A stretch of DNA of 64,000 nucleotides. Origin: Perna viridis. Taxonomy: Eukaryota. The notes under the pieces were generated by a model. It saw only the letters and a program-made list of their open reading frames with translations. It searched no databases and was not told the DNA's origin. Both the position numbers and the translations under genes were made by a program. Location: positions 54,194,862 through 54,258,861 of the forward strand of contig CM074511.1 of assembly GCA_037379345.1 (NCBI GenBank). Reading direction: 5' to 3'. This document shows, piece by piece, positions 6,301 through 61,277 of this stretch. Numbering within the stretch: position 1 is the first letter of the stretch; every line of letters begins with the position of its first letter.

Positions 6301-9300
6301 GATTTTTGTTCTTTGCGAAGTATTTTCGAAGCAAGCAAAAAAAAACAAACAAACAAACAAACAAACAAACACACAAAAAAAAGACAGAGAGAGGTTACAC
6401 GTTCACCAACAATGACTGGTCCGTCTAACATTACTACAATATGTATTTAAATGGTTTGGTAATATAAACAGAACGTTTTGTGACTATGGTTTTCACATTT
6501 TTTCAAATTCTTAAAAAGGTTGCAATGTTTTTCTCTCTATATATATACCTGTTCCATGGTTAGACCAGGGTTTACTGTCTGTGGCACTAGAGGTGGCATC
6601 ACTTTGGTGGCAATTAAATTGTGTGTCAAACCAAATCTTTTGTCACTCAACAGATGTTTATAAATTCCTATGAATGTCAAATTAAAAAAAAAAGGTAAGT
6701 AGAGAACGTTGGTTAGAATTCAAATGCAATGTAAAATCAGAATAGACAGAAATGGATATTACAAACATATGTTTTATATACTTTTTACAGTTTTTAGTGG
6801 AGTCCATGCTTGCAGTTTTTAGTAGAGTCCGAGTTGCTCATTTGCTTTTGTCACTGTGTATGTATGATTTTAGTTACTTCATGTTCTTTGTTGTGTATGT
6901 CTGTTTTTCATGTCTGGTCTTTGTCCCTGGATTACATTCTTTTGATTCCGCTATAACCTTGGTTCCCTTGATTATTCTTTATATTTGTGGTATCAAATTA
7001 TATGCTACTTATTCGTTTTTGTAAGCAATTTAAAAAAAAAACGTATCTAAGTTGTATTCATCTTCTTGCACATACAAACTAAAAAGCATGGGTATCCATT
7101 TACTTTACATAGTTTGAATTCAAACAAAAACTTACCAACAATTGTCATAACAATAGTTGCATCTTGACATTGGTTTTCTGTGAACAAAGGCAGCACCTCG
7201 TCTAAAATAGTCATCTTGTCTAAACTGTCTAGAACGTGGTCTATACATGTCAGAGCATTTACTTTTACCTTAAAATAGATGTGGCGTTTAATATTTTACG
7301 TAAAACCTATATACAGAAATTGACATTGCATTCAAACATGACCCTTTTGATACAGATAAATGGATTAAAAAATGTTTAATTGATTGGTTGCTGTATGACT
7401 GTGTGTACAAAATTCTTACATCTTCTGCAGAAAAAGTCTCTGACAGAGGTAGCTATAAAGACAATAATGACACAAATAACAAACCGTGGTTAAGTAACGT
7501 ATGCAGTGAGGAACGCGGTAGATTTAACAATGTATGATCTACATACAAATGTATAATAAACATAAAATGAGCTAGATTAAGAGCATTAAGAATAATCTGG
7601 CCAGGGATTATCGATCTTCACTAAATGAAGGTTATCAAAAATGTGCAAAAAAGTGCTCTAACGAATAATGAAGAACATTGTCAAAAACTGATACGACATC
7701 GTTTTGTGAAAGTACTACGAAAATATTTCGGAAACAAAAAACATAGACTTCAGTTGATATTTAAACATTTTATGAATATTTAAAAAAAAAATATAGAATG
7801 CACAGGAGGATGACGCCTTTCATGACATTTCCACCTCCGAGCCTTGTGATGACACTGTTTTGAGAAAATGTCAGGAAAGCTTTTGATTCTGTATCAAGAT
7901 CTTGATCATGGGAAAAAATTAAAAAATATGACATTAACGAAAAATGCTTCAAAGTTGTCTATAGTTTTTAAATTATGCGTAAGATATAATGGCTGTGTAT
8001 CTGAATTTTCCATGTTTAACAGGTGTGAGACAAGTGAAATTCTGTTACCCTTTCTTTTTACAATATGTTTGAATGATTTGAGATTTAAAAAAAAAAAATA
8101 GACGAAAAATGTTTAGAGACGATCCAAAGCATATTTCATGATCAATTTCATATTCATTTTGAGTTATTTGTTTTGTTATATACTGACGACACTGTCATTA
8201 TATCGGAGTCTAAAGATAATATGCAAAAAGTCTTTGGATATCTTTCAGTCATAATGTGACCAATGGAGGTTAACAGTCAACGTAGAAAATGATTAATCAG
8301 GCACAGAAATCGTTGCATATCATTCGTAAATGTATACGAAATGAAGAAATCCCAACAGACATACAGCTTCAGCTTTTTGATTCAATGAAAAAAAAAAACA
8401 TTTTATCATATGGATGTAAAGTATGGGGATATGAAAATTTACAATCAATTGAACAGGTTGAATGTAAGAATGAGGAGCATGGTAGACTTCGAATGAAATT
8501 TAAAAATGGTGTCATATTGGAATAGACTCTGGAATGATGTACAAAACCCAGTAGCTTATTGCTTAAACTTATGTTTATGTTAAGTGCTCTCGATTCAAGT
8601 TTAAATGGCTCAACAGTATCAAATCTTTATTGAACATTACTGGTCTTTGGTACATATTTTTGAACAAAACAGATATGATTCATAAGAAGTTGTAATTGAA
8701 CAAGTTTTATCAGATCATTTTATTTCAAATTGGAACAACTCTATCTCCGATTCCTCTAGGGGACAATTCTATGGATCATTTAGAGGGTTTGGTGTGGAAA
8801 AATACTTACTCCGATTAAATTTTAATAATGAGATATGGTTTACCAAATACAGAGTTTACGTATACCTATAGGAAAAGGAAAGTGGAAAAATAAAATAAGC
8901 AATCCAAGTTTGTCTAAAATGCAAGGTCACTTGTCAATTTGCAATGTGGAGGTTTATAAGAGACTCAAGGAAGTTGCTATTATGTTTTAGTAACTGCTGT
9001 GAATATGAATATTTTAAAAATGTATTGACATAATTTTATTTATTTTTTATTTATTAATTTATTTAATATTTTTAATTTCTATATTTTCTAATTATCCCAA
9101 TTTTCTTTTCTTTTATAATTCCAATATGATATTGTATCTCATATGCTCATGTTACATAAATGATATGTCTGAGTTAACTTGAATAAATCTTGTTAAATCT
9201 GGTTAAAACATGATTGATCAAAAGCAAACTTTGTGACGTTTCTGACGTTGTTCTTCCGTACCAACTGGCGACGTCATAGACGGAAAATAGGAGATACCGA

Positions 9301-15300: not shown

Positions 15301-18300
15301 TAATCAGTACTGCTTTTAGTCACACCAACATTAGTTATATCATTTCAAAAAACCTTTTTTTCATTACGCATTTCATTTGACGGAAACGCATGGAAAATGT
15401 TTGGACACCATAACAATATTGAAATACGCACAAGATTATGTTTCCTTCCAGAAACAAAGCAAAAAAATCACACAAAAATAACATGCAAACTTTCTAATTC
15501 ACTTTATTTCATTCATTCATTGAGGCACCACTACAGATGTATTTATCTTAATTCCATTGCAGTCAGTGCACAATTTATCACTGCTAATCAGACCTAATGA
15601 CAAACACTTCTCGAAGTTGAATTAGGAAATCAATTTAACCAGTTTAACAAATCTACCGTATAGAACAGATAAGATTTGCTCGTAATCCATAAAGGTCCTA
15701 TAATAAAGTTTCTCCTAGAATGCAAGCGGTAATTGATAAAGAGTATGAAACTAAAATAGTAGCAAGAACTATTACAAGAAAGGGATAAATTAGGCGTCAA
15801 AGCTTTTGCTTTTATTCCTGTTACAATCTCTTCTACTTAAGTCATTAATTACCTCCGTTTTTTTAACCACTATATATATATATGTGTGCCTGAAATATTC
15901 CCAACGATGTTAGAACTGTCAAATTTGAAGCAAATTGGTCGTTCCCTCAGAGGGATTCGAACTCGTACCGCAGTGACATCTATGGCAACACCGTCTGCAC
16001 TAAGTCCAGCGCCCTAGACCACTCGGCCAGCTAGGGTATATAAAATATAGCTTTCGCTGGCCTGGTCATTCCTTCTTGTAGGATTATTCTAGGGCTGTAT
16101 CGATGTATGGTAGTACGGGACAGCTCATCTAGGTGTTGTTATGTAGGATATGTAGGAGATCTAATTAAAGATACATGTCACCAAAAATCGATATGCACAA
16201 CCGTCTCAGAATGTGACGACTCCATTCGCTCCATCGGATCAATTGATACAAGGAAGATAACATCAGCGTAGAAGGGTCTGAAAAATTCCCAACGATGTTA
16301 GAACTGTCAAATTTGCGAATTTAACACCGGTAGGGTAATCGTCCTCTGCTTTTCTAGAAACACCCACCGAGTTGCCCATAAAAAGTCAAGTCCAGGGTAG
16401 ACGAAAGAAGAAAGGAAAACTATGAAATTCTGAACAAATCAGTTTTCAAAGAACTTAAAGTAACGAAAATAATACATACAAAGTTACAAAAGCAAAATAG
16501 CAACTCGGACTCCACGAAAAACTGGAAGCATGGACCAGGTGCACCAGTAGGGAAAGCATCATCTGCCTTTCTCGAAACACAGGCTCATAAAAAGTCTATT
16601 CGGCCTAGACGAAAGAGGACAGAAAAACTATGACAAGTTGAGCAAATCAGTTTTCGTGTCGCCGATGGATACAACGTAACAATCTAAGAGTTCATGAAGG
16701 CGACCATAAAACTTCTGTAGGGATGACTTCAATCTTGTAACAACATAACCCTGTTCCAGAAACCTAATTGTTAGAGGTCTAGCGAAATACAAAAATTCTG
16801 CGTAGTTTCGTCAAGCTCTGGCATAAAGAATGAGTTGTGATATGAACACTCCATACGCAGGTGCTGACGGGATGTTGCCACAGATAAAAAGAAAGAAGAC
16901 AATTCTGAATGAAAAATCATCACGTTTGTCGTAAACTTTGGTCAATAATTTTCCCTTACTATCGATTTCTTAGTGTAGGTCAAGATATGAGGCTGACTTC
17001 ACAGTGTCTGTAGTATCATTTATCTCAAGTTCTTTGGGGTAGATGCGATGTATCAAGTCCCCGAAATTAGGATTGTTTCAAGATAATACGACATCTATAT
17101 AACGGAATTGAGATTAAAGGATCTAGCTAGCTTTAAGAGTGAAGGAATAGGTCAGCAAGTAGAGGAGCACAATTCGTTCCCATTGAAATGCCGACCGTTT
17201 GTTGAAAAACGCGTCCACCATACTGGAGAAATATGTTGTCGATCAAAAATTCCAGCACAATTCCAGTATGAGGAATCTCTACCAAGAACTACATGTATAT
17301 ATTTGTACCTAGGTGTACCATCTTTTTTGGAACGATGTATAACTGAGTATTGGGAATAGAAGTATACAGTGTTGAAAAATCATAGGTTTTAATGCTATTA
17401 TATTTTGATGATAGTTTTGAACTGATGGTCTCCAGAAGATCTTTTGAATTTTTCAGGATCAACATTGAATTAATACCACTACGGGAGTAACAAGCGTTGT
17501 GGTAGGACTGCAGACCCTCTTTGACAGCTGCGAGTAAAGAAGTTAGAAGTTTTGAAAGAGGTTTGGTGGTACATTTTGCAGATCCAGTTATGTAACTTGT
17601 TTGTATTGATTCTTGTGGAGTTTAGGAATCCAGTACATAAACGGGAAATCATCGTCTTTGGTAAAGAGACCAAAAGAGGATAGCACCGATTTATGGTTTT
17701 CCACAATCTCTTTGGAGAGTGGTGGCAGTATATGTCTTATCATTGCTGTTTTGTTCTACGTCTACCTCTGATAATAAACATTGGATGTAAAATGTTTGCA
17801 GACAAAAATAATGTTTTGGGCTTAGTCTGCTGGTACGACAACATATTTGTCATGTATAGTAGACATTGTTTTTGCTACATCGGGGTCTTTGAAAACTAAT
17901 GTAGCATTGGCACTCATTGACCTACTTAAAACTTTCATTTGTTTCAAAATGAAAGACCACACGGCCTTTGACCACTCTACAAAGAATCAATGTCTTCTTG
18001 TTCTCGTTTTATCCATTTTCTTGCGTAGTCCTCCACGACATTCATAAGAACTTTAAAGTTATAGTTTCAATTTATGGAGCGTGGTTCATGGTACTTGGGA
18101 TCTGTAGAAAGGATATTACGCAGAGATTCGTTTTCGATGATGGTTAAATCTCCCGTAACGACGTGACGAAAGTGCCATATTTGAATGGAGAGTTTTTGCA
18201 AGAACAGTCTGGTGGTTTAGCCTTGAAGTCCTCAATCTCGAGGTTCTGCAATAGCCTATTATGATTGAACATTTTGGATGCAGTGGGTGAAAAATAGGAA

Positions 18301-21300
18301 TATGAAATAATCAGTATTAATTTGTCTTTTATTTCATACGAGATGAGTTAGATTGCAGGTGTTTTATTTAATTTGAACATATCGGCCACATGATTCAACA
18401 TACTAGATACTTTGTTAAAACTTGTCTGGATATATTAGTTTTACATGGTTGGAATATTTAATTTTTTGAAGCATGTGGTCAAAACCTCCTGCAAGACAAA
18501 ATGAAATGAAATTACCCAATTTAGCAAAATTTACACGTTTTTATATTTAACTCATATTTAACTAAATATTATGCAATATCCACACTAATTTGAGTAAGTT
18601 TATTTTCAGGGACGAATTTGATATAAACCGAATATACCCCTTTAGAATAATAATAGTTTCTTAAATAAATTCTTTCTATCAGTAATAAGTCTATTCAAGT
18701 TTTTACCAAAGCTGAAACCGTAATGACAATATCAATATGTGGAGTTTGAAGTTCATTATACAATTTGTATTTTTGAGTACAAACATGGACATCTGTTGAC
18801 TGAAAACTATGTAAAGCTTCAAGCAGCAAGTTAAATAGAAAAAAATGAAATTTTACCAGAGAGAAGAGCTGAGCGGTAGGACGATATCTTATGTCTTTGT
18901 TGATCATTTTTTCTATCGGTTCTACTAGTGGCAATGGCATCTGATGAGCAATATCACCAAAACGCTGTGTAAGCTGAGAATATAAAATGCATGTCTTTAT
19001 ATATAAATGTAGAAGTCATTTCTGTTGAAAATCCGTTTGCAAGATATAATGATTTTTTATATTTTTAAGGGCATTCTCAATCCAAAGTAAAAAAAAACAT
19101 TTAGATGAATCACAAGAGGCAATTTATCAATTACTTAATCTTAAGACAACGTGTTTAAATAAGGTAATATTCTAAATGACTCGTGTCATAAGGAAGGAAT
19201 GACCTTGCTTTATTTTATGGGGTAACTGATTCAAGTAGGCTTTTCAAAGTAGAATCTCGCACTCATTAAACATAATCAAACTGCTATTCTTAATAAAAAA
19301 TAGAAAATTGCTATTGCAAATCAATAAGTAATATTCATAATACAACATTTGGGAATAAGTATAAAACCATTGAAAAGAAACGCGTCTCGAATTTAGTCAT
19401 CATAAACCTCATATTCAAAATTTAGTAATGAGTGAATTCTACTGGTTAAATAAGTTACAATTTAATAATCAAAATAATTTTAGTAATATTAATTGCGCAT
19501 ACCAAGAACAAAAACAATACTTATTTAGCGACTACTGTTAAACTGTCGAGGGATTGATTGTATATAATATGAAGCTAGGAATATAAAGATATAAACTAAT
19601 GTACGTTTACTTGATCAAGCTGTTTGATATATTGTTGACTGTTGTAAGCGGCGTCTATCATGGGCTCTCCCCTGTTATATATGGTGCATATAAGAATCCC
19701 TAGAGAGAACATATCACTGAAGAAACTACACGTTTTGCACGTTTGGATCTCTGGCGCTATATAATTCAAATCTGGTTGAGCCATTTTGGGAAATTTAGTA
19801 CTCCATTGATGACATGGTGTCGATTCCTGTATAAGAAGAAAGGAGGATGATACCATATGAATTCAAAACGTAAAAAAATAAAACGTTAAGTTAGTAGACA
19901 ACTCTAAAAGGGTTTTTATTAATCAACTAATTTATGAGGAAAGAATCATCTATCTAAAACACATTTCTTCGTTTTTAAAAATAATCATGGCATTGTTTCA
20001 CAAAGCTTACGTAAGACTTACCTGTACTGAAGTCCAGTTGGTTAAAGATTATAACTATAACACTGAGCATTCTATTTTGTCATCTTACAAAATCATACAT
20101 GTATTTCCAATGAACTGATAATGTTTAAAATAATGTATAAACAGTATGTCTAAATTATTTCAAAAGAATTTCTTTGAGATAAAAATTAATATTGGTAAGT
20201 TATAAACAACAATTGTATTAAGCCTCTTTTTAAAAAGGGGGATAATTGGCGGTATTTGTATTTGTTTCATATTGCAAAAGTATTCGGTGACCCCATTTTT
20301 CTTTTTGAAAAATAAAGGAATGTCAGTTAAATGTTCTCAAAATAAATTTTGGAAAAAAAGTTATCTAATGATAGTTTGGGAAATATTAAAATTACCCATA
20401 AAATCCATTCAAAAATTGTCTTTATTTAGGCTCAATTATCTCGAAATCAAGTTCAGTGACCTATGATTTTACATTAAAATTCTGAAGTATGCTCATCATT
20501 CAATATCATCTTCTAGAAAAACTAGGAAAATTTATCTACTATAAAATATAAGGTATGATCTACCTTAAGGATTTACGTGTACACAAGTCTAACGAGTGCT
20601 TTCTGAAAAGATCGGAATTATAGACGTTATATGGTCGTCACATCACCGTGACTTGTTTGTCCAATGGAGGGTTATTGTTTCTAATATGAATGGTAACAAC
20701 CAAATTAGCGAACTGATAAAAACTTGACAGTAGTTAAAACGAAACCTAAAAGGAAAGTAATGGCAATATCAGGACAAATTTTGAAAGTTGGTCCTGACTT
20801 GGTACAGGCATTTCAAAATGAAAGGTGGTTTAAACCAGGTTTTATAGTGCTAACCCCCCAGCCTCAATTATTTTTCATTGTTTCCGGTACATTTCAGCAA
20901 AACATGAGCAACATCAAATTGCCACCAGTCAAAATCTGTAATATATGATTAACGACCTTCATTTGTCATAAATGTACTTTCTATTTTATCAGGCTTGTTC
21001 TTCAAGTAATAGCACTGTTTTTGTTTTGCTTGAATAAGAAACCAACCATCTATTCGTGCATCTGCGATCTTCCTGCTTTCAAGTGAGCTCATGCTATTCG
21101 TTTCAATGTGCTTTTTCATTCCTTTAAAATTGATAATTTTACTTCTTTTTAAGAATTATTTCTGCTTGAAACACTAAAATCATGTACACGAGGTTTTTTG
21201 TTTTTTACTCGTGAAAAATCCTGACCCTTTTTTGGCAGAGTTTAAAATATAATAATGCTTTGTGTCCAGTCAGATGTTACATAATTCATTATCATGTCTT

Positions 21301-24300: not shown

Positions 24301-27300
24301 TTAATGAGTTTAAACTTTCATCTTTAGTTTTGTTAAATGCTAATGAAAAAAAAAGAGTAATGAAATTGCACAGGACGAGAAACATCTTTCAGTTGATGGA
24401 GTGTTGCAACAAATTAATTGTTATTATTCTCTGAAAGACGACATCGTATAAGTGAAATACACTTACTTGTAAAATCCCGCACTGAATTTCATAAAATATA
24501 AACTTGTAATCCTAAAACAAATATTTAGAAAATGATTACAGGAGTAGATGCTTAGAACATGCTACTTGATTTAAAGAAAGACTAGCTAAAAATAAAAATG
24601 GTGGTACACAACATTAAGTATAACAATGGGAGATAGTTTTGCTTATGACACACGACTTAAATATGTTTGCAGACACTATCACTATATAAACTATGTTATA
24701 TTTACTATTCCTTTCAAAATTATCATACAAGTTATACAATGACTTTAAGTCAAATTTTATTGATTTTAGCTGTTTGCGCTAAAATAACAAGGTTTAGAAT
24801 GCATGTCATATTTTTATTAAACATTACATAAGTTCAAGTGGTATTGCACAACAATAGCTTTTTTCAATGTATCACGTAAAGAAATGTTCATCAAAATTAT
24901 CAGTGGACATTATTTTTAGAAACACCCGCCGAGCTGCTCATAAAAGTCATCTACAAGGTAGACGTAAGAGGAAAGGAATACTATGACACGTTAAACATAT
25001 CAGTTCTCATGGTGCAGATGGATACACCGTAGGGATCCACAAGTTGATGGTTAGATGACGACTAAAAAATTCTGTAGTGATGACTTTAATCTTGCAGCAA
25101 CATAACCCGGCTCCAGAAGCTAACTGTAAGAAGCCTAGAGCGGTACAAAAAAGTAAGCGTAGTTAGGGAAAGCTCTGCCATAACGTATGAGTTGTTGAAT
25201 GAAAACTCCATACGCTGAAGGGATGAAAAGATGAAATGGATAGGATGAAAGGAAAGTTGCCAAATCGGAATAAAAAGTCACGCGTTTGTCGCTTAGTTTT
25301 GTACAGATAATGACAGATCTCGCTACTCCATCGTTGCCGTATATAAGTTTTTCTATGACGGCTAGACGGCTAATGTCCAATGAATTCTACTCAATTCATC
25401 GAGAATTTGAACGACATAGCCAAAATGATTGTTCTATGTGTTTTTCTCACGGTATCTTTGCTGTTCCCAGGGTGATGTTAGGTACTCTCGTCTCCATCTG
25501 TTCCAGAAATGTTATATTAGTTTAGCTTAACATTTCGAAAGTTCATTGAGTCCTGCATGTGTATCGTCGGAAGTACCATTATCTTCTTTAGAGACTTGGA
25601 ATCATTTTTACTCAGTATGAAAAATATCTATCAAGAACTTCATTTTTATATCTAGGTGTACCGTCTTTTTTGGAGTAACAAAAATATATATTTTTGAGTC
25701 GGGATTTCAACTGAGTATGGGAAATAGAAATATAAAGAATTGAAAAATCATACGGTTTATTGCTATCATATTCTGATAATAATCTTAAATCTTAAATTGG
25801 GGGTTTCCTGAAGATCTTTCGTAATTTCCGGGATCCACATTGAATTAATACCACTACGCGAAAAACAAGTGTCATGGTAGGACTGTAGGCCCTCTTTGAC
25901 AGCTGTGAGTATAAAAGTTAAAAGTTTTGAAAGAGGTTTGTTTGTATATTTTGCAGATCCAGCTATGTAACGTTGTTTGCATGGCTTCTCGAGGAGTTTA
26001 GAAATCCAGGACATAGACGGTAGATCACAGACTGAGCACAGGGATTGCACAGATTTATGGTTTTCAACTACCTTTACTTTCGAGAGTGTGGTAGTAGTAT
26101 ATTACTGTAATTATTTTCTACGTCTACCGCTAATTATAAACATAGGATGGAATACGTTTTGCAGACAAAAACAATGCTGCTTTGGACTTTGTCTGCTGGT
26201 ACAACAACATATTTGTCATGAAAAGTCATATATACATCAGGGTCTTAGAAAACTGATGTGGCATGACACTCATACTTTTATACGTTTCAAAATTAAAGAC
26301 CTCACAGTCTTTGCCCTCTCTGACAGTGAATTAATATCTTCTTGTTCTCGTTTTGCGTTCTCCTCCACGGCATCCATAAAAACCTATTCATGGAGAGTGG
26401 TTCACAGTAAGACCTTTAGAAAGGACCTTAGGGTGAGAGTAGTTTTCGATGATGTTTAAATCTCCCATGATGACGTTACCGAAAGGTCCATATTTAAATG
26501 GGGAGTTTCGGCAAGAACGGGTAATTTAGCCTTGAAGTCATCAATATCGAGGTCCTACAATAGCCATTATGAATGAAAATTTTGAGTGCAATGAGTGAAG
26601 TAAAGGAATAAGAAATAATCGGCATTGGTTTGTCTTTGACACATGGAGGAATTTTGTTTGTAACGTTTCTGTTAGGGAGGATGTCAGCCAATTCGATTTG
26701 ATTCATACCTTTGTTGACAAACAGTAGTGGAAGAAATAACCGTTTTTCTTCATGTTGACCTTTAACGCAGACTGGTTTAAAGAGTCTGTGTCACAAATAT
26801 TCAAAAACATTGTCATTTTCGTAGCAGACAAAATATGATATACACTTGAAATTATAAAATCTATTTTTGTTTTTTTTTACAAAAGAAATCGTAATGGTAC
26901 TGTGATGAAATATGCCTTAAATTGTCTAGAATGACTGTCGTGCTAATCATAAGGCTGTAAAAACAAAATACAGCAATACAAAACAAAACAAAAAAATACA
27001 AACAAAGACAAACAAACAAAGATAAAACAAAACAAAACAAAAAAAAAACAAAAAAAAACTTTTCTGTGATATTTCTTGAAAAATCAATAAAAAGTACTAT
27101 ACTGCGACATAATTCTAAAATATAATGAAGATAAAAATGTAACTAAAAAGTAGTGTATTCAGGAGGAACCAATTTTTGCAATCAAAGTGTGTTGTATAAT
27201 TGTTTGCTCTACAAGACACCAAGTCAGACGAATACAAATAGATTCATTAGGCAGTTAACCTCCTCATCAGGCTGAAATCTTGATGCCAGAAAAATGAACA

Positions 27301-30300: not shown

Positions 30301-33300
30301 TTTACAAAATATTAAATAAACAAAGATTTATGATAAAGATTTATGAATCGCTTTAATAATAGTTTTAGAAGAATAACTGGACTTTTATTTCTGAAACTGA
30401 CAAAAAATGGGAAAATGTTTAGCTATTTGCCTATATAAAACCTCTTATATTTAAGAATAAATAAATAAATAAATAAATGACAAAAAAACCCATATAATTC
30501 AATTCTGCACACAAATAATATTTTATGGACTATTCATATAGAAGACTGTAGAAGTTTATAGAAATTTTAGTGTGTAGTTTTTTAAACTGAATCATCTTGA
30601 GAAAATATATTAAATACTTCTGTTTCAGTCAAATTTAAATGCCTAAAACCATGTAATTAATCAATGAGGTAACCAAACTTTGAATTATAATGACTTATAT
30701 TGAATAAAGAGAATTGCTGAGCACATCATTGTACAGCTTATGGTGCAAAATAATGTCAAATGTTTAATTTGTGCATGAACGGACAGATTTATACGATGGA
30801 CAAAGTTATATACTGGATAGAGTCGAATCCTGAACAAAGCTAGAGCCAACATAAAAGAAAGCGTGAAATCTCATTAGAAAGTATAAAACAGTGTCTTTTC
30901 TTAACTCTTAATGGTTTAGGAGTTTTAAAACTCACAAGTTTTTGGTTAGATTTACTGTCTCTTGGCAAAGAACATTTCAATATGAAAGAAAATGTAGTAT
31001 GCAATAGAAGGCGTCATTTTACACATGTTCCCACCTAGTGCAATATATTTCTCAATGTTCCCATTTTAAACCCTTAATCTGTACTTTACTTTCCTAGTTC
31101 ATATAAAGCAAAGTTGCTGGAGGCTGACATTTTTGTTCTAGAACCACTAATTTTGAGTTATTTCACTTTTACATCAGTATTAATTTGAAGCCTTGATATA
31201 AGGGATCATTTAAACGTTTTTCATGACTTAAAACTTTTTAATTAGGAGTACCTCCCTAACCCCAGGTCTACTACATTTAATGATGATATATTTCGTTATT
31301 CTAAAAGTTTACACAATTTGGTATGTTCAATATTTGAACAATTCGGCCCTAAAAATGAAATAAACCAAATCTGTATGATTTGCATAATATTTAGTTTAAT
31401 GAGTGCTTACTTTACCTACAAAACCTTTAAAATATGTCATAACATTTTTGGACACAAGAATAATTGGGTTGACAAATTTTGATTGCCACTGGAAATAAGG
31501 CGAGATTGGTAGGGTCGGGCAATTTAGCTTCCTGTTGCAAAGACTTCTTCTCCGATTGAATACCCCAGCAGGGTTCTTTAACGTACGAGGAATGTACGAT
31601 GGGTTCCAAAAGTTTTATGGTCGTCATCATGAACTCGTGGGTCGTAATGGTGTATCCATCTGCGCCATGAAAACTGATTTGTTCAACGTGTCATAGTTTT
31701 CTTTTCCTCTTTCGTCTACCCCAGACTAGACTTTTTATGAACAACTCGGCGGATGTTTCTAGACCGGTGCATCTGGTCCATACTCACATGTTATAGTGGA
31801 GTCCGAGTTGCTCATTTGCTTTTGTTACTTTGTATGTATGATTTTAGTTACTTGATGTTCTTTGATGTGTATGTCTGTTTTCCGTGTCTGATCTTTGTCC
31901 TTGGATTACATTCTTTTGATTACCGCTATAACCTTGGTTCCCTTGGTTACTCCCAACATGTTGCACCACTATGGTTTGTGGTCAGGGTTTCCGTATCATG
32001 GCATGACGACCTCAGCATTTAGCATGCCTGGGTTACCACTTTCAACTCAACAACCTTAGGCACGCAACCCAGGTTGCTCTGTGGGTTTTAAGCCCTATTT
32101 AGTCGCCTTCTACGACAAGCTTAGCGCTGCAGCGGTCCTATTCATTTGACACCTGGACCCCCATGGGGCAGAAATTAATCAAAGTTGGAAAAAGACGATA
32201 CGTGACGTCATTTTGATACGTAAATGTACTAGCTGGTAAATCGTTTTTAGTCAACTATTATTATGTTAACAAGGCCTTTAAATAACAGAGCCGGTAGCTG
32301 CCATAAACAATTAGATTCCTTTTGAAGGCAAATTATAAGACTAAATATGGATGTAAATATAATGTTCAATAGTGTATTTCCTATGCAAAGTAATAAAGTA
32401 TTTTTTGTCCTTAAAAACTTTTTCACAAGGTAAATTTATCCCAGTCTAATACTAATGGAGTATATAGTACCTCACTTTATCGACAGATTTCCAGAAATAA
32501 AGCAGTCTTTGTTAAAGAAACTAATGCCATCGATAATTATTAAATTATGGCTCCTCGAGAGAAGACTTATTGTAGTATTTCGATCATCCACCAACCACGA
32601 TTGTGAAGTATTCAGCTGTAACATAAGTGCTTTTTAGGACAAGACATATTTGAAAATCAATGAAGTTATAACTAAGTGTGTGTTTTTTTTCATTGGAATA
32701 GGCAGGTGGTTTTTCGATCAGTATTTGATATCCCTTAAGTTGGATTGAAAAATCCTCTCTGCAGTTTATCAATTATGCCAATTTCAATTATAAAAATGGA
32801 ACAAATCTGAATTTAGAAAACCTGGTTTATTTGATCGAGGAAATCGTTTCTAAACGCTTCGTCTCGTGCTAAAATGTAAGAGAAAAGTAAAGTTAAATTC
32901 CCAAATTAATTAAAACTAATTTCTCTCTTAATACTCTCATACTATTAAGGTTGAATAATCGTATAAAAAATCGTGATGACTTTCTCTCTTTAGAGACTGA
33001 TATATTTTTCTAGTAATGTATCCTACAGAATATTTAAAACAAATCTCATTTCTATCTTTACCAGGAAATTGCACTAAATGACAACTGAAAGTGTTCTGAT
33101 ATTATTCGCACGAACTTAGTATCATATTACTCTCGAAGCTTATCAGGATAAATCTGAAAGTTTATTAGGGATTCATCTGTGGAAATATTATTGAAATCGG
33201 CTTTAATATAAAAAAAGCTCATCCGATTCATATTACTGCAAGTCCATTGCAGATGACCAAACCTCTAAATTATTTTTTCATATTCAAACTTCGAAATTCA

Positions 33301-37300: not shown

Positions 37301-40300
37301 ACCGTAATGAATCATGGACAGTTATCGTAAACGCATCGTATTCATTCTTGGTAAGTCGTAAATCGATTGTTCACACTTATAAATAATCGTTAAGCACTCG
37401 CTAATTACTCGTAAAAGTGGCTTCTTAGCAAGGATTCGTGTATATTTTTATGTGTGCTGGGTATAAAAAATACTATAAGATGCGTATGCAATCCGGAAGT
37501 GACAGTAAATTGATCGGTGGCCATTGTGAGTGCTGGATGAGTTTACCTATGAATGTCGAACTGTACCGACGTGTTTCTGACTGTTCAGCTACCTGCAAGT
37601 CCCATTCATATGAAATTCATTCTTCATATTAGTTTTGCATTAGTTTTTGTCTTATCTGGTTATTGGTTTTGTATTGTTTACGTTTTCTGTACAGATACTT
37701 GCTTTCATACGATTATGTGATTTATTTTGGGTTTTTTTTCTGTCGAGCAAGCGGCGACCGTATTTGTTTTATTTGTATATGTTTTTCTTGCATGGTTTGT
37801 ACAATCATTTTTGTTCCTTTTCCCATTATTAAGTACTTTCCTATTAATCCCTTCTTTAGAAACAGAAAGAGTAATCAAGGGAACCAAGGTTATAGCGGTA
37901 ATCAAAAGAATGTAATCCAGGGACAAAGACACGACATGGAAAACAGACATACACAACAAAGAACATAAAGTAACTAAAATCATACATTCAAAGTAACAAA
38001 AGCAAATGAGCAACTCGGACTCCACTAAAAACGGGGAGCATGGACCAGGTGCACTTGTAGGGTAAGCGTCCTCTGCTTTTCTAGAAACACCCGCCTAGTT
38101 GCTCATAAAAAATTAAGTCCGGGGTAGAAATTGCGAATATGGTATTTATCAGATCACTTAAAAACGTAATTATACTGAAACACATGAACTTTTTTCTGGG
38201 CGGTAATCTACAATTGTATAAAAAGCACCATAGCTTTGTAAATTATTCAGATCTTATTGACAATCTCTCTTACAATTTTATTACATCATTCTCATACATT
38301 TGTTGGCGTCCATATAACCTCATCAAATTCAATAAGTATCAATAAATAAATTACGAAATTACGTTGCACTTGTAACAAAATGCATCGCAAGGAAATCAAA
38401 CATTTTCATCATATCATGAAATGAATTTTAAACTTTATAAAAAAGGGAAGATTGACATGATATAACTGATTGTCATTCATACCTAATAGTTCTATGTATA
38501 AATCATTGGCAGCGTGATTTCCCTTAACGAGGGGTGTATTACCACATCTCTAAGGTACCGAAACATGATCAATATTACATTTAGACCTATTTACTGCGAT
38601 AACAACGCGGCTAATTTCAAAGTCTATTCGGTATCAAGTCTTTTCCCTTGAAACACTATTTGCTAATGGAAAAGAAATTAAACCTAGAAAATCACATCCT
38701 AAATCTAATATACTTTGCCTGTTTTGGTTACTTGTAACAGAATATTAAGTGCTTTCATATCCCACTTTGATATTTATACAGTACCAAACCAGAATAGAGT
38801 TGTAAGAGGCATCTTTGCGACATCATGGCGCGATCATAATCTATTTTAATACTTCCATAAACGGTAAAATAATTATACGAAATGTGACAAAACAATTAAG
38901 CATCGTGTCTAATTCTGAAAGTTAAGAAGAGATTTATTTATAAAATTTCATTAATAAGCCGTTTCAATGGCTTCATTTGCATCACTGCTTAATCGTGACA
39001 ATATTTTTTCGATAGATCTCATTCGACTAAATATGATATATTTATTATGATTATGAACTCTAAGCAACTTGAAATATGAATAATGAATAAGTGAACAATA
39101 GCCACATTTAAAAGATAAAAGGAACCACATACAAACAAGTTATAAATGAAACGTAAAATAAAATATAGAATATGGGCCCAAATATTCGGCCTTATGACCT
39201 TAGTAAGAGATCGAAAAAAAAAGGATTGAGGAGAAAACTGACAATTGCCGACCCATATCACGGAGACAAGGTGCCCTTCAAAATTAATCTTGATCATTGT
39301 GAAGATGCGTCAAGTTCAAGATGAAAAATTATGAAATGGTATGTGAGCTAACGAAAAGCAATTGAAACCGGGATATGGTGACTAAATAATGCAGGTTTTG
39401 TCATTCATTCCAAAGTGGCGGGAAGTGTTTATCGCCTGAACAATTTTCCAAAAGGACAGTTACTTTCATGTCGTCAACGATGTGGTGTGTCTCCCGAAAA
39501 TGTTAACTTTCATTCGTATGTGAAAACTGAATATCCTGATTTTCAACTTTAAATCCACAGTTCTTAGAGACATATATACGTCGTCAGTATTCAACGATTT
39601 GCTTCCATTTACTGCCTATAAAAATGAAGGAGTAAAAGCGAACCTTGTGACAAGTTCTATCAAGTGTGCCACTAGATGCCCCCTGCAAATTACAAAGGCA
39701 CACGGCACTGTAAGCAACCATGATGTTCGACACGTTCTTTTACTTGGGAAACTGACGAGGTCGTCAGGACAGCCAATGTCTTTAAGTTAAACGATGGTTT
39801 CATTTGTACCTCAGAAAACGTCGTTTATGCTGTGGTTTCCAAACGCTGTAAAATGGTTAACATGAGCTAGACCCATCGGAGGTTGGGTGATCGTTTTATA
39901 GACAACAAACAAAACGTCACCAATGGAAAGGATTATCCAGTCGGTGAATATTTTCGGATGGCAAACCACAGCTTTGACGACATGAAAGTAATGTTCTTTT
40001 GGAAATATGTTCAGGCGAAAAACAACGAATGTTCCTAGAATAGTGCATCATCAGCTTTCTTGGGAGAATTGCTTTCCGTCAGCTCACATATAATTTTATA
40101 ATTTTTCGTCTTGAACTTCACGCAACTATACAATGGTCAAGATCAATTTTAAAAGGAACCTTGTCTATGTGGTATGGGACGGCAATTGTCAGTTTTCTCC
40201 TCAATCATTTTTTTTGTCTCTGACTAAGTCCAAAAGGCCGAACATTTGGGCCCATATTCTTTATTTTTTAACGTTTTATTTATAATTTGTTTGTGTGTGG

Positions 40301-59422: not shown

Positions 59423-60665
59423 CCTGCAAAGAGGTGTGGCACATTTTATTTTACAACACAAGCTCCTTTTCTCATTCTCTCTAGAGCTAGCAGTTTCTTC
59501 ATAATAATTTCCCACGTCAACCATATACGGCTAATTTTTTAAAGTACCATAGAAAAAAGATATTGTACACCTTGTTCACGACAAAAGAAATTTTAAAAAT
59601 CCAATAAAAATCACGTGAAGTCACTTATACATCAAATTTCATGAGAAAACAAGGAAAATTAGATGTAGTGATCCTGCAAAGCTAGCATTAACTGTACCAT
59701 TGTGTTGTCGATATCGGATTTGTTCCTGTGCTGGCTAATGACAGCCACTGCTAGCCAGTCAATCAAGGTATTTTCCGATTCCACAGCACTAATCATAATT
59801 GCTTAATGTGGCTTCAGGTGTCTTCTTAAGGAATTACAAATATAGATTTATTACTTCTTCATAAGACGTCAATAGATTTGCAATAATATTTTTCATTGCT
59901 TTGCTCATGGGTACACAAATTTGGCGAAGGTTAAAGAGTTGATTCTTTGAAATCGATTTGTGTTCCTGTACGTTATATGTTTTGATACATTTTTGTACTA
60001 GTTTCTTGAAGGAAGAAAAAAAAACTGTTTTCCGTGTGTTTATTGTATTTGTTGTTCTGTTCGTTTGTTCGTTTTTTTATGTGTTTTATTTATTTATTTA
60101 TTAATTTTTTGTTTGTTTGTTTCGTTTCGTTTCGGGTTTTATTAAAAAGGCGACAACGTAAGTAACAAATGTTAAAGGAATGTATTATCATTTGTTTTTG
60201 TAATTCTTATAAAATCCAGTAGCCATGGTAACATACTGAAAAAAATATTACTGAGTTTTAGTACAACTCAGGGGTGACTTTTAAAAAACTAACAGCTAAA
60301 TACTATGTTTTTTTAAAATATCAGGCACTTAGACACAACCACAGGATAAAATCATGCATGGAGTAAAATGATAGGACTTTTTTCGATTCATTCTCTCACA
60401 TTTTTAATCCCAAAAGTTGGTGCGAAATAAGGTATTTTGAAAATCAGTCATCTGATGCTGAGGAGAGAATCTAATACGGCAGGAGACGAAACGTTCCGGA
60501 TACCATTCTTCATTTAAATTACATCTGTCTATGTATAAATGTATAAATATTGTTAAACAATATATCCACCAAATTTCAACTTTAAATTTTTGGTGTGCGA
60601 AACAGTGCGCCTTAATGTAACTGTAGAGTGCACCCTTTAGTAACGTAACGAACACCTTAATAAGT

Positions 60666-60829
60666 ACAAAGACCAGACATGGAAAACAGACATACACAAC
60701 AATGAACATATAGTAACTAAAGTCATACATACAAAGTAACAAAAGCAAATGAGCAATTGTGACTCCACTAAAAACTGGGAGCATGGATCAGGTGCACCGG
60801 TAGGGTAAGCGTCCTCTGCTTTACGAAAA
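60666..60829 (-). mobile_element. Naiad-type PLE 3'-end copy
   Basis: acaaagaccagacatggaaaacagac...gtagggtaagcgtcctctgcttt. Confidence 0.82.
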
Positions 60830-61277
60830 CTGTGTGGAGATCTACCAGCCATATCTACTAATACAAACGAATGTGTATAGATGCTATCAGTGTGGTCATC
60901 TATAAATTGAAAACGATACACAAATCTAGATTTTCAATATCCAAATATAATACATAATAAAAAATATAATAGAATATTGGTTCCCTTCATTACTCTTTCT
61001 ATTAAACTAATGATTTTTTTTTAAATCCATCAATTGCGATGTTCAATATATATAGTAAGATACAAAGGTGATATAAATTATTTAATAGTAAATATAGGAA
61101 TTTTTATTATTTGTTAATGTAAAATGTTTTAAAAATTGTGAAGTAACACCCTTTATCACACCCCTTATCGCATCTGAACCTTTACCGGACCCTTACTTTG
61201 GATAATCTTTCGTTTTGTTGCAGGGTCTATTAGACACTCTGTTTACAATAATACTCTTCTACTTAAATGTATGATAA

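Follow-up and report, generated by a model that had tools for sequence, protein, structure and literature searches.

A decayed copy of a twister-like RNA domain in the tail of a Naiad-like Penelope-type retroelement from Perna viridis

A stretch of 74 bases (positions 20792-20865, minus strand) in a window of 64,000 nucleotides of Perna viridis DNA (GCA_037379345.1, contig CM074511.1, positions 54,194,862 to 54,258,861 of the forward strand) is a dead, mutated copy of a roughly 95-base RNA domain, which derives from the tail of a Naiad-like Penelope-type retroelement. In better-kept relatives this domain has the layout of a circularly permuted (type-P5) twister self-cleaving ribozyme, within a group of elements that has been reported to lack canonical hammerheads and for which no other ribozyme has been described. 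On present evidence, which is of sequence and predicted structure only, the domain is probably a real twister-class variant, whereas the window copy itself is a relic.

The window copy and its repeat family

The minus-strand sequence at 20792-20865 reads exactly as given in the preliminary description, and the observation made there is confirmed. It holds UAA, ACC ACC, a 5-bp hairpin UUUCA/UGAAA (20811-20823), a 4-bp hairpin CCUG/CAGG with the loop UACCAAGU, a G-rich run upstream (20854-20860), and AACCUGGUU. The last of these had been described as a GGTT..AACC hairpin, but is better read as a 9-nt palindrome that cannot form a stable hairpin. The features of the copy, all on the minus strand, are as follows.

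20686..20944 (-): the whole repeat copy, a 5'-truncated 3' UTR tail of a Naiad-like Penelope-type retroelement (family W), covering consensus positions 28-313 and 77% identical to the family majority consensus; the 3' end is shared with all copies, and the 5' start falls in a cluster of starts at consensus 25-31.
20865..20874 (-): relic of the P5 5' strand, ACCGUAAUGG in the consensus and AAAAUAAUUG here, with three positions changed.
20854..20864 (-): linker (AGGC), then the P2' / G-A / T1 strand, GG-GA-GGU in the consensus and UGG-GG-GGG here, so that the conserved A and the T1 U are lost.
20833..20853 (-): insert standing where P1 should be, with a decayed first palindrome (20845-20852; consensus UAGCGCGCUA) and an intact second palindrome AACCUGGUU (20833-20841).
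20830..20832 (-): UAA, the predicted cleavage step between U20832 and A20831, placed by analogy with the twister layout (Liu 2021, PMC8501958) and with the Rfam Twister-P5 alignments of relatives.
20824..20829 (-): P2 5' strand (consensus CCC, here ACC), then the T2 strand AC and the C that closes P3.
20809..20823 (-): P3 hairpin UUUCA-UUU-UGAAA, followed by U and G; relatives have different sequences that still pair.
20793..20808 (-): P4 hairpin CCUG/CAGG with loop L4 UACCAAGU, in which ACC is the T1 partner and GU the T2 partner.
20787..20792 (-): junction where about 20 nt are deleted, seen as a gap in the alignment row of this copy; the P5 3' strand (consensus CCAUUGCGGU) is missing, and the core is partial (positions 1-93 of 105).
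20692..20709 (-): decayed terminal stem-loop near the 3' end of the element (consensus GGUAAU-loop-AUUACC), read from the sequence; a role in priming is inferred.

With the P5 3' strand deleted, the A of the G-A step mutated, and the P5 5' strand and first palindrome decayed, the window copy cannot fold in the manner described below and is inert, in line with the earlier suggestion that it may be inactive. Taken alone, it is no more than chance. An Rfam search returned nothing at the gathering scores, nor at E<=10 in 900 nt, and in a 111-nt search twister-P1 gave only a local match of 12.0 bits (E 5.3, against a gathering score of 67.2) among other noise hits. A covariance model built from the contiguous half of 24 canonical twisters of this genome gave 7.9 bits (E 4.5); this model scored family W at noise and missed a related lineage, X, but was too family-specific to be a fair test. 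The signal rises above chance only at the level of the family and its relatives.

The copy belongs to an old repeat. There is no second copy in the window, but a search of the genome gave 1,454 first-look candidates, of which all 40 that were scored matched, and a further search gave 1,711. The repeat had been described as SINE-like and as a possible retrozyme-like element that carries a twister. On the arrangement of the copies, their link to a reverse transcriptase and the RNA reads, this reading is very unlikely: copies are interspersed, with one copy per 3-kb locus and no tandem arrays, they share a fixed 3' end with 5' truncations that form a continuous range, and long copies run into a decayed reverse-transcriptase (RT) C-terminus about 100 nt upstream. 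RNA reads gave no circular-junction signal at the motif. In its favor, many copies are short, and several 5' ends cluster at consensus 25-31, which looks like a defined short form. The repeat is instead the 3' UTR of an RT-coding, Naiad-like Penelope-type retroelement. The mollusc origin inferred in the preliminary description is consistent with the Naiad load.

The assignment to the Naiads is tentative and rests in part on a sister lineage. The W lineage is represented by decayed RT C-termini only, 37-63% identical to the sister lineage. In the sister lineage V, PADKA or PADKT (the DKA motif) and a D-C-S-C-K stretch (the C-x-C motif) are visible, whereas a GIY-YIG-like stretch was seen by eye only and a Pfam search gave just a weak RVT_1 match. 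The tail does share the traits expected of Naiads, in that no hammerhead was found in it at E<=10 and the copies are interspersed and 5'-truncated, without poly(A). Furthermore, an RT C-terminus lies 100-545 nt upstream of the domain, on the same strand, at five loci of related lineages (L140, L150, L193, L196 and L202).

Architecture and conservation of the domain

The family consensus adds what the window copy has lost, namely a 10-bp stem (P5), not predicted in the preliminary description, which closes the motif exactly where a type-P5 twister needs it. The order of elements in the consensus and in related lineages is the P5 5' strand, a short linker, P2', G-A, the T1 strand, about 22 nt, Y-A-A, P2, the T2 strand, the P3 hairpin, the P4 hairpin, whose loop U-NCC-AA-GU pairs with both the T1 and T2 strands, and the P5 3' strand. 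In the consensus T1 is GGU/ACC and T2 is AC/GU, such that the loop L4 has the form U-NNN-AA-NN expected of twisters, with NNN pairing with the strand after G-A and the last two bases with the two bases before P3; in the window copy T1 is damaged (GGG against ACC). The minimum-free-energy fold of the consensus keeps P5, P3 and P4 and reaches -28.0 kcal/mol, against -21.1 +/- 3.2 for shuffles. The core is 82-85% identical between the lineages W and W2, while the flanks are only 31-49% identical. Intact relatives, with a domain of roughly 100 nt, include L202 (2058-2155), L150 (339-433, minus strand), L140 (265-364, minus strand) and JYMV-type copies such as L204 (6270-6367).

Two controls bear on the possibility of a chance look-alike, that is, two adjacent hairpins in an AT-rich repeat which happen to resemble twister P3, P4 and L4. 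In 519 Mb of composition-matched shuffles a relaxed twister descriptor hit 0.34 times per Mb, hence hundreds of times per genome without the P3 and P5 requirements, but it never hit with both P3>=4 and P5>=6. A pattern search gave 88 hits in the genome against 0 for the reversed pattern, and also found 90 metagenome stretches. The same layout recurs, with covariation, in other samples and in lineages whose RTs are only 38-56% identical to the query RT (the L069 ORF, from V, the window's other Naiad lineage). Together with the Rfam matches of relatives, these findings make a chance resemblance very unlikely.

Along these lines, in an alignment of 13 sequences across lineages 89.5% of cells pair, against 74.8% in shuffles, and none of 500 shuffles reached the observed value. 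All 10 P5 pairs, 4 of 6 P3 pairs and 1 of 4 P4 pairs (the outer one) show double changes. The free (third) T1 pair is U-A nine times, G-C three times and G-U once, with no mismatch, and 80 of the 88 genome matches, read by eye, keep a standard pair there. The P2, T2 and two of three T1 pairs never vary in this sample, which is partly because the search pattern fixed them, so that they carry no evidence either way. Within the family there is no covariation beyond shuffles (84.5% against 84.4%), since the copies decay neutrally from one master, and apparent compensations in P5 are CpG decay on both strands.

The usual P1 helix is absent. The roughly 22 nt between the T1 strand and YAA cannot pair their two ends, but hold two palindromes instead, one just after the T1 strand and one ending at the YAA step. 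A palindrome of 8-9 nt ends at the YAA step in 57 of 74 sequences, against about 10% of shuffled inserts, and its sequence differs between lineages. P1 is reported to be dispensable, at a cost in rate (PMC8501958). A second deviation concerns P2. Lineages of the X/Y type show GGGG-GA-GGG with (U/C)AA-CCCC, which fits the twister layout. In W- and Z-type lineages (GG-GA-GGU with YAA-CCC) P2 is ambiguous: it is 2 bp plus a bulged C if the guanine before the conserved A stays unpaired, or 3 bp if that guanine pairs, which would leave no free counterpart of the catalytic G. The linker before P2' (AAGC) also differs from the A-rich strand of canonical twisters.

A SECIS element, suggested by AUGA at the base of P5, was considered but rejected on inspection by eye, since no GA partner follows the 3' strand. 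The domain of lineage V (window 53169-53269 and others), taken for comparison, runs parallel in order, but its P2 and L4 do not fit.

Comparison with known ribozymes and retroelements

The closest known system is the type-P5 twister ribozyme (Rfam RF02684, clan CL00120; Roth et al. 2014, as summarized in PMC6765202 and PMC8501958). The order P2'-GAGGG-...-UAA-P2-GC/AC-P3-P4 with the loop GU(C/A)CCAAG(C/U), the T1 and T2 complementarity, and the ends open at P5 are the same. The Rfam Twister-P5 model aligns over its whole length with two relatives, L202 (21.9 bits, E 0.0075) and L150 (20.3 bits, E 0.017), with P2', GAGGG, a 22-23 nt gap, (U)AA, P2 and L4 in register, and was the only or best hit among 4,227 families; both scores remain below the gathering score of 37.6 bits. 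On the other hand, Rfam found no twister or hammerhead in a near-consensus copy of W (L009), and nothing in lineage X. Genome-wide searches with Twister-P5 and P3 gave one weak hit each among only about 70 scored candidates, while Twister-P1 found many bona fide copies in other repeats, which are not this family. The AC/GU pairing of T2 in W matches variation seen in bona fide twisters of this genome (L043). Further differences from the type-P5 twister are the two palindromes in place of a P1 hairpin, the P2 of 2-3 bp, T1 of GGU/ACC and T2 of AC/GU in the window's lineage, and the animal retroelement host.

Twister-class motifs carried by a retrotransposon have been described (2021, PMC8501958); they tolerate variation next to the cleavage site and a weak P1. 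Those motifs are of type P1, sit at the 5' end of an RTE-type LINE and were shown to cleave, whereas the present domain is permuted, sits in the 3' UTR of a Penelope-like element, and is a ribozyme by inference only. Minimal hammerhead ribozymes in the pseudo-LTRs of Penelope-like elements, active as dimers (Cervera and de la Pena 2014; Lunse et al. 2016; cited in PMC6765202), belong to a different ribozyme class but share the class of host element and the region (3' part / pLTR), and both have palindromic sequence in place of a closing helix, which suggests action in pairs; for the present domain this is only inferred from the covarying palindromes. The Naiad clade (Craig et al. 2021, PMC8557442) comprises very abundant RT-coding elements with 5'-truncated copies and no poly(A). 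Naiads were reported to lack canonical hammerheads, and no other ribozyme was described, whereas here their tails carry a twister-like domain.

Interpretation and significance

The interpretation in the preliminary description is thus partly supported. The twister-like motif in type-P5 order, the upstream G-rich P2'/T1 strand, the AC/GU pairing and the inactivity of the copy hold, but the SINE or retrozyme identity and the replacement of P1 by a hairpin do not. We favor, with reasonable though not full confidence, the view that the stretch is a dead relic of a structured RNA domain with the architecture of a type-P5 twister in the 3' UTR of a Naiad-like Penelope-type retroelement. What the analysis itself establishes is that the helices of the fold and one T1 pair are kept by compensatory change across lineages, and that the domain is far better conserved than its flanks. 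It is by inference that intact copies would self-cleave between Y and A, and that the palindromes would pair between two RNAs, or two neighboring tandem units, to give the helix that P1 gives elsewhere, as dimeric hammerheads do in other Penelope-like elements; the cut would then trim read-through or tandem transcripts.

Evidence on cleavage in vivo is indirect. Three or four of 32 truncated copies start within 2 nt of the predicted cut at consensus position 142, where about 0.8 are expected, but the excess of 5' ends is broad (consensus positions 139-160) and could reflect reverse-transcriptase stalling at the hairpins. In RNA-seq data, in which W2-type reads are present, reads of a sister lineage run through the predicted site and no pile-up of ends was reported, although reads were clipped near the site because the reference copy is diverged, which makes this comparison weak. 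The read-through, the scores below threshold, the weak P2 with its ambiguous catalytic-G register in W/Z lineages, the covarying palindromes, which point to RNA-RNA pairing in their own right, and the conservation relative to the flanks would also be compatible with a non-catalytic element of the 3' UTR, serving recognition by the reverse transcriptase, RNA dimerization or packaging, and either descended from a twister that has lost activity or merely convergent on its shape. This alternative is considered unlikely, since the invariant positions are those of the twister core (YAA, G-A, the AA in L4, and the T1/T2 partners), a T1 pseudoknot pair covaries, and Twister-P5 aligns end to end with two lineages; a purely protein-binding or dimerization element has no need for this particular core.

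A more far-reaching reading, possible but tentative, is that Naiad-type elements, thought to be ribozyme-free, carry a P1-less, type-P5 twister which works only when two copies pair through two covarying palindromes. It would be a twister counterpart of the dimeric hammerheads of other Penelope-like elements, and would process their tandem or read-through transcripts.

For the window itself the practical result is one of annotation, as this copy is inert. In a wider context, Penelope-like elements are the textbook case of retroelements that always carry a hammerhead ribozyme, found in canonical members in the same region (PMC8557442, PMC6765202), and Naiads, which dominate bivalve and other invertebrate genomes, were the puzzling exception. 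If their tails hold a twister-class ribozyme, the rule that Penelope-like elements need a self-cleaving RNA would be restored with a different ribozyme class, twisters would gain a second retroelement host besides Perere-3, and a natural twister without P1 that may depend on dimerization would represent a new architecture for structural and mechanistic work.

The window motif and the repeat that carries it

The minus strand of window 20792-20865 reads exactly as stated in the preliminary description, and the observation is real. It contains the following elements:
20830-20832 (minus strand): UAA
followed by ACC ACC
20811-20823 (minus strand): a 5-bp hairpin
20793-20808 (minus strand): a 4-bp hairpin with loop UACCAAGU
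20854-20860 (minus strand): a G-rich run

On its own, however, this copy is not distinguishable from chance. Rfam gave nothing at gathering score over the whole window and no twister at E<=10 in 900 nt, and in a 111-nt search the twister-P1 model returned only a local hit of 12.0 bits, E 5.3, beside three unrelated noise hits. A weak C/D-box snoRNA-like match (SNORD27, 23 bits against 52, E 0.33) at window 20460-20517, minus strand, about 170 nt downstream of the repeat copy, is probably noise as well.

The window holds no second copy of the repeat. The genome (723 Mb in 46 contigs) gave 1,454 initial candidates for a 351-nt query, and all 40 that were scored matched at 70-83% identity. The copies are interspersed, one per 3-kb locus; they share one 3' end, which lies next to a short stem-loop and has no poly(A), whereas their 5' ends are variable. 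Long copies continue upstream into a decayed reverse-transcriptase (RT) C-terminus with the motifs FRYIDDV, LYDKRDDF and KFYGR visible, which ends about 100 nt before the motif in locus L063 and about 250 nt before it in loci L004 and L023. A very abundant sister lineage, here termed V (at least 17,000 RT candidates), shows the PADKA motif and a C-x-C stretch, both of which were used by Craig et al. 2021 to recognise Naiad-type Penelope-like elements (PMC8557442), while Pfam saw only a weak RVT_1 match. The repeat described at first as 'SINE-like' is thus the 5'-truncated tail of a Naiad-like retroelement, with the minus strand of the window as its sense strand; the window copy spans 20686-20944. 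All copies are 72-92% identical to the majority consensus, which was computed only for the 313-nt non-coding tail, for coordinates and folding, so that the lineage (W) is old. Nine of the 86 sampled copies, the window copy among them, begin within a few bases of each other near ...UUUACCGAUUUUGACUGG (window about 20941-20948; consensus positions 25-31), which looks like a preferred 5' end or a short form of the element; no ribozyme or promoter was found there.

Lineage V, a second and much more abundant Naiad-like lineage, is represented in the window by multiple copies (6802-6947, 16325-16835, 31607-31952, 37864-38168, 41756-41996, 44918-45182, 53027-53438, 54975-55195 and 60607-60871). Shortly after its stop codon (about 10-50 nt) sits a roughly 100-nt multi-stem domain closed by a 13-bp stem, the inner part of which runs parallel in order to the twister-like domain (AAGC, GAGGA, UUA, CCCU, ACC, a palindrome GGUGCACC, then a loop UCCAUGCU), but its P2 and L4 do not fit a twister. 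Two further stretches of about 1.6 kb (window 16606-18256 and 24942-26565), lying 8.3 kb apart and related at 77-87% identity (direct repeat families D9-D19), both abut Naiad-like tails.

The family consensus and its related lineages

The consensus of 59 copies shows that the window copy has lost about 20 nt right after P4. The lost piece is the 3' strand of a 10-bp helix, ACCGUAAUGG / CCAUUGCGGU, which brackets the motif exactly as the P5 stem of a type-P5 twister should. The consensus runs in this order:
P5 5' strand
AAGC
GG-GA-GGU
23 nt
UAA
CCC
AC-C
P3
U-G
CCUG, loop UACCAAGU, CAGG
A
P5 3' strand

GGU is complementary to ACC of the loop (T1), and AC is complementary to GU of the loop (T2), a layout that can be compared with the canonical one tabulated by Liu et al. 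2021 (PMC8501958). The minimum-free-energy fold of the 95-nt core keeps P5, P3 and P4 at -28.0 kcal/mol, compared with -21.1 +/- 3.2 for shuffles. Measured against this consensus, the window copy carries three changes in the P5 5' strand, a G in place of the A of G-A, a G in place of the T1 U, and a decayed first palindrome together with the absence of the P5 3' strand; it is therefore inert.

In order to judge whether the family-level match exceeds chance, a descriptor was written that requires TAA (with T fixed before AA), a P2 of at least 2 bp, G-A plus a 3-bp T1, a 2-bp T2, and a 4-bp P4 with loop U-NNN-AA-NN. In 519 Mb of composition-matched shuffles it hit 0.34 times per Mb overall, 0.025 per Mb with a P3 of at least 4 bp, 0.023 per Mb with a P5 of at least 6 bp, and never with both, whereas the consensus has a P3 of 5 bp and a P5 of 10 bp. 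The descriptor is post hoc, so that these figures are only a rough guide. Two more objective tests failed for W itself, namely Rfam and a covariance model built from 24 canonical twister-P1 halves of the same genome (7.9 bits, E 4.5). Within the family there is no covariation beyond shuffles (84.5% paired against 84.4%), as expected for copies decaying neutrally from one master.

A sister lineage, W2 (loci L063 and L068), has diverged flanks, 31-49% identical in a global alignment, but a core 82-85% identical to W; its shared differences fall in the 23-nt insert and in P3, where an inserted A pairs with the U that is bulged in W. A pattern that fixes only GGGAGG, CCCACC and CUGUNCCAAGUCAG, with two gaps, gave 88 matches in the genome and 0 for the reversed control, and additionally 90 stretches in metagenome contigs from several projects. 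These matches fall into lineages, each with its own P5:
W2
X (locus L057)
Y (own genome)
Z (JYMV contigs; CAA instead of UAA; 12-bp P5)
L140
L150/L193
L202
L199

Examples of the differing P5 stems are UUGGCCAAUU/AAUUGGCCAA in L150 and CUUUGACCAC/GUGGUCAAAG in L202. Lineage X (L057:5330-5470, minus strand; genome and contig position G000:C14:24627129-24627269) is a low-copy family of nine copies at 90-94% identity plus two distant hits that match only the core; its motif fits the canonical P2'-GA-GGG / UAA-UCCC register, and one copy has the canonical loop UCCCAAGU. Records filed as metagenome contigs (loci L128-L217; contigs JYMV01..., Ga0256844, Ga0163109-111, Ga0181589, ENA ORXM01) carry many young copies of a related retroelement tail (lineage Z, copies over 90% alike), and these records therefore contain animal host DNA. 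Where enough upstream sequence is present, a Naiad-like RT C-terminus, 38-56% identical to lineage V, lies 100-545 nt upstream on the same strand.

In a 13-sequence cross-lineage alignment the proposed pairs are 89.5% standard, against 74.8% in shuffles (0 of 500 reach it) and 31-45% when slid. All 10 P5 pairs, 4 of 6 P3 pairs and 1 of 4 P4 pairs show changes on both sides, and the one T1 pair left free by the pattern is U-A nine times, G-C three times and G-U once, with no mismatch. Upon inspection by eye of the 88 genome matches, that same T1 pair is standard in 80, being U-A in W/W2-type copies and G-C in X/Y-type copies. P2, T2 and the other T1 pairs never vary, partly because the pattern fixed them, and hence they say nothing either way.

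Relation to twister models and the segment in place of P1

For two relatives the Rfam Twister-P5 model is the best hit of 4,227 families, and for L150 the only one, aligning over all 58 positions: L202 scored 21.9 bits, E 0.0075, and L150 20.3 bits, E 0.017. In these alignments GGGG-GAGGG aligns to P2'-GAGGG, and a 22-23 nt gap stands where the model has P1, followed by (U)AA, CCCC as P2, and CCUG-UCCCAAGU-CAGG as P4/L4. Both scores are below the curated 37.6 bits. The W-like intact copy L140 obtained only a local twister-P1 hit of 14 bits, E 1.5, again as the only hit. Thus, W joins the twister class through its relatives, not on its own score.

Several features fit less well. In W/Z-type lineages P2 is only 2 bp plus a bulged C if the G before the conserved A is kept free, and if that G pairs, P2 is 3 bp and there is no free counterpart of the catalytic guanine; the linker before P2' is AAGC rather than A-rich, and there is no P1. 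The genome holds many bona fide type-P1 twisters (RF03160 up to 57.5 bits; 56 of 61 scored candidates match at E<=10; loci L032-L056, e.g. L033:1501-1560 and L034:1501-1560, minus strand), which fall in at least two other repeat families with conserved flanks. T1 covaries among them (CCC/GGG, CUC/GAG, CAC/GUG), and one copy has the AC/GU form of T2.

Between the T1 strand and YAA every lineage has about 22 nt with two self-complementary blocks. The first block starts 1-3 nt after the T1 strand and reads UAGCGCGCUA in W, GGGAUCCC in L150, GAGAUCUC in L202, GGCAUGCC in L199, GGCGCGCC in L140 and GUGAUCAC in Y. The second block ends at YAA and reads AACCUGGUU in W, AAUCUGAUU in Z, AACUAGUU in L150 and L202, AACCAGGUU in L199 and AAGUACUU in Y. 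A palindrome of 8-9 nt ending at YAA is present in 57 of 74 sequences, against about 10% of shuffled inserts, although most of those 74 are one lineage, and the real count is five different sequences. Perfect 8-nt palindromes cannot make stable hairpins, and selection for self-complementarity therefore points to pairing between two RNAs; this is an inference, which parallels the dimeric hammerheads of other Penelope-like elements (PMC6765202).

Evidence bearing on function and comparison with described elements

Nothing in these data shows cleavage, and two lines of evidence bear on it only indirectly. Of 36 copies sampled by their last 117 nt only, 32 are truncated, and their starts include consensus positions 139, 141, 142 and 143, next to the predicted cut at 141|142, whereas about 0.8 starts are expected in that 5-nt span; there is, however, a broader excess over positions 139-160 that could be RT stalling at P3/P4. 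Furthermore, three RNA-seq runs of the same species (X4-X6), mapped on a family copy at 80% likeness, show that the sister lineage W2 is transcribed, with 74-79 reads per run continuing from the core into the W2-specific 3' flank with 0.87 agreement (L093:307-345 and its flanks). Reads carry sequence through the predicted site, and no place was reported where many molecules begin or end. Since the reference copy is diverged at the site and reads were clipped there, this is weak evidence against efficient cleavage.

In the literature searched, papers that mention both twisters and Penelope-like elements do not link the two, and a 2026 preprint on retrozymes does not mention twisters. Craig et al. 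report that Naiads lack canonical hammerheads and describe no other ribozyme.

The preliminary interpretation of a permuted twister-like motif in a SINE-like repeat is supported in part. The analysis itself establishes that helices of the fold and one T1 pair are kept by compensatory change across lineages and that the core is far better conserved than its flanks, while catalysis and the dimer model are inferred. The window copy is a dead relic, but the family is probably a twister-class variant, of type P5, without P1 and with twin palindromes, resident in the tails of Naiad-like retroelements.
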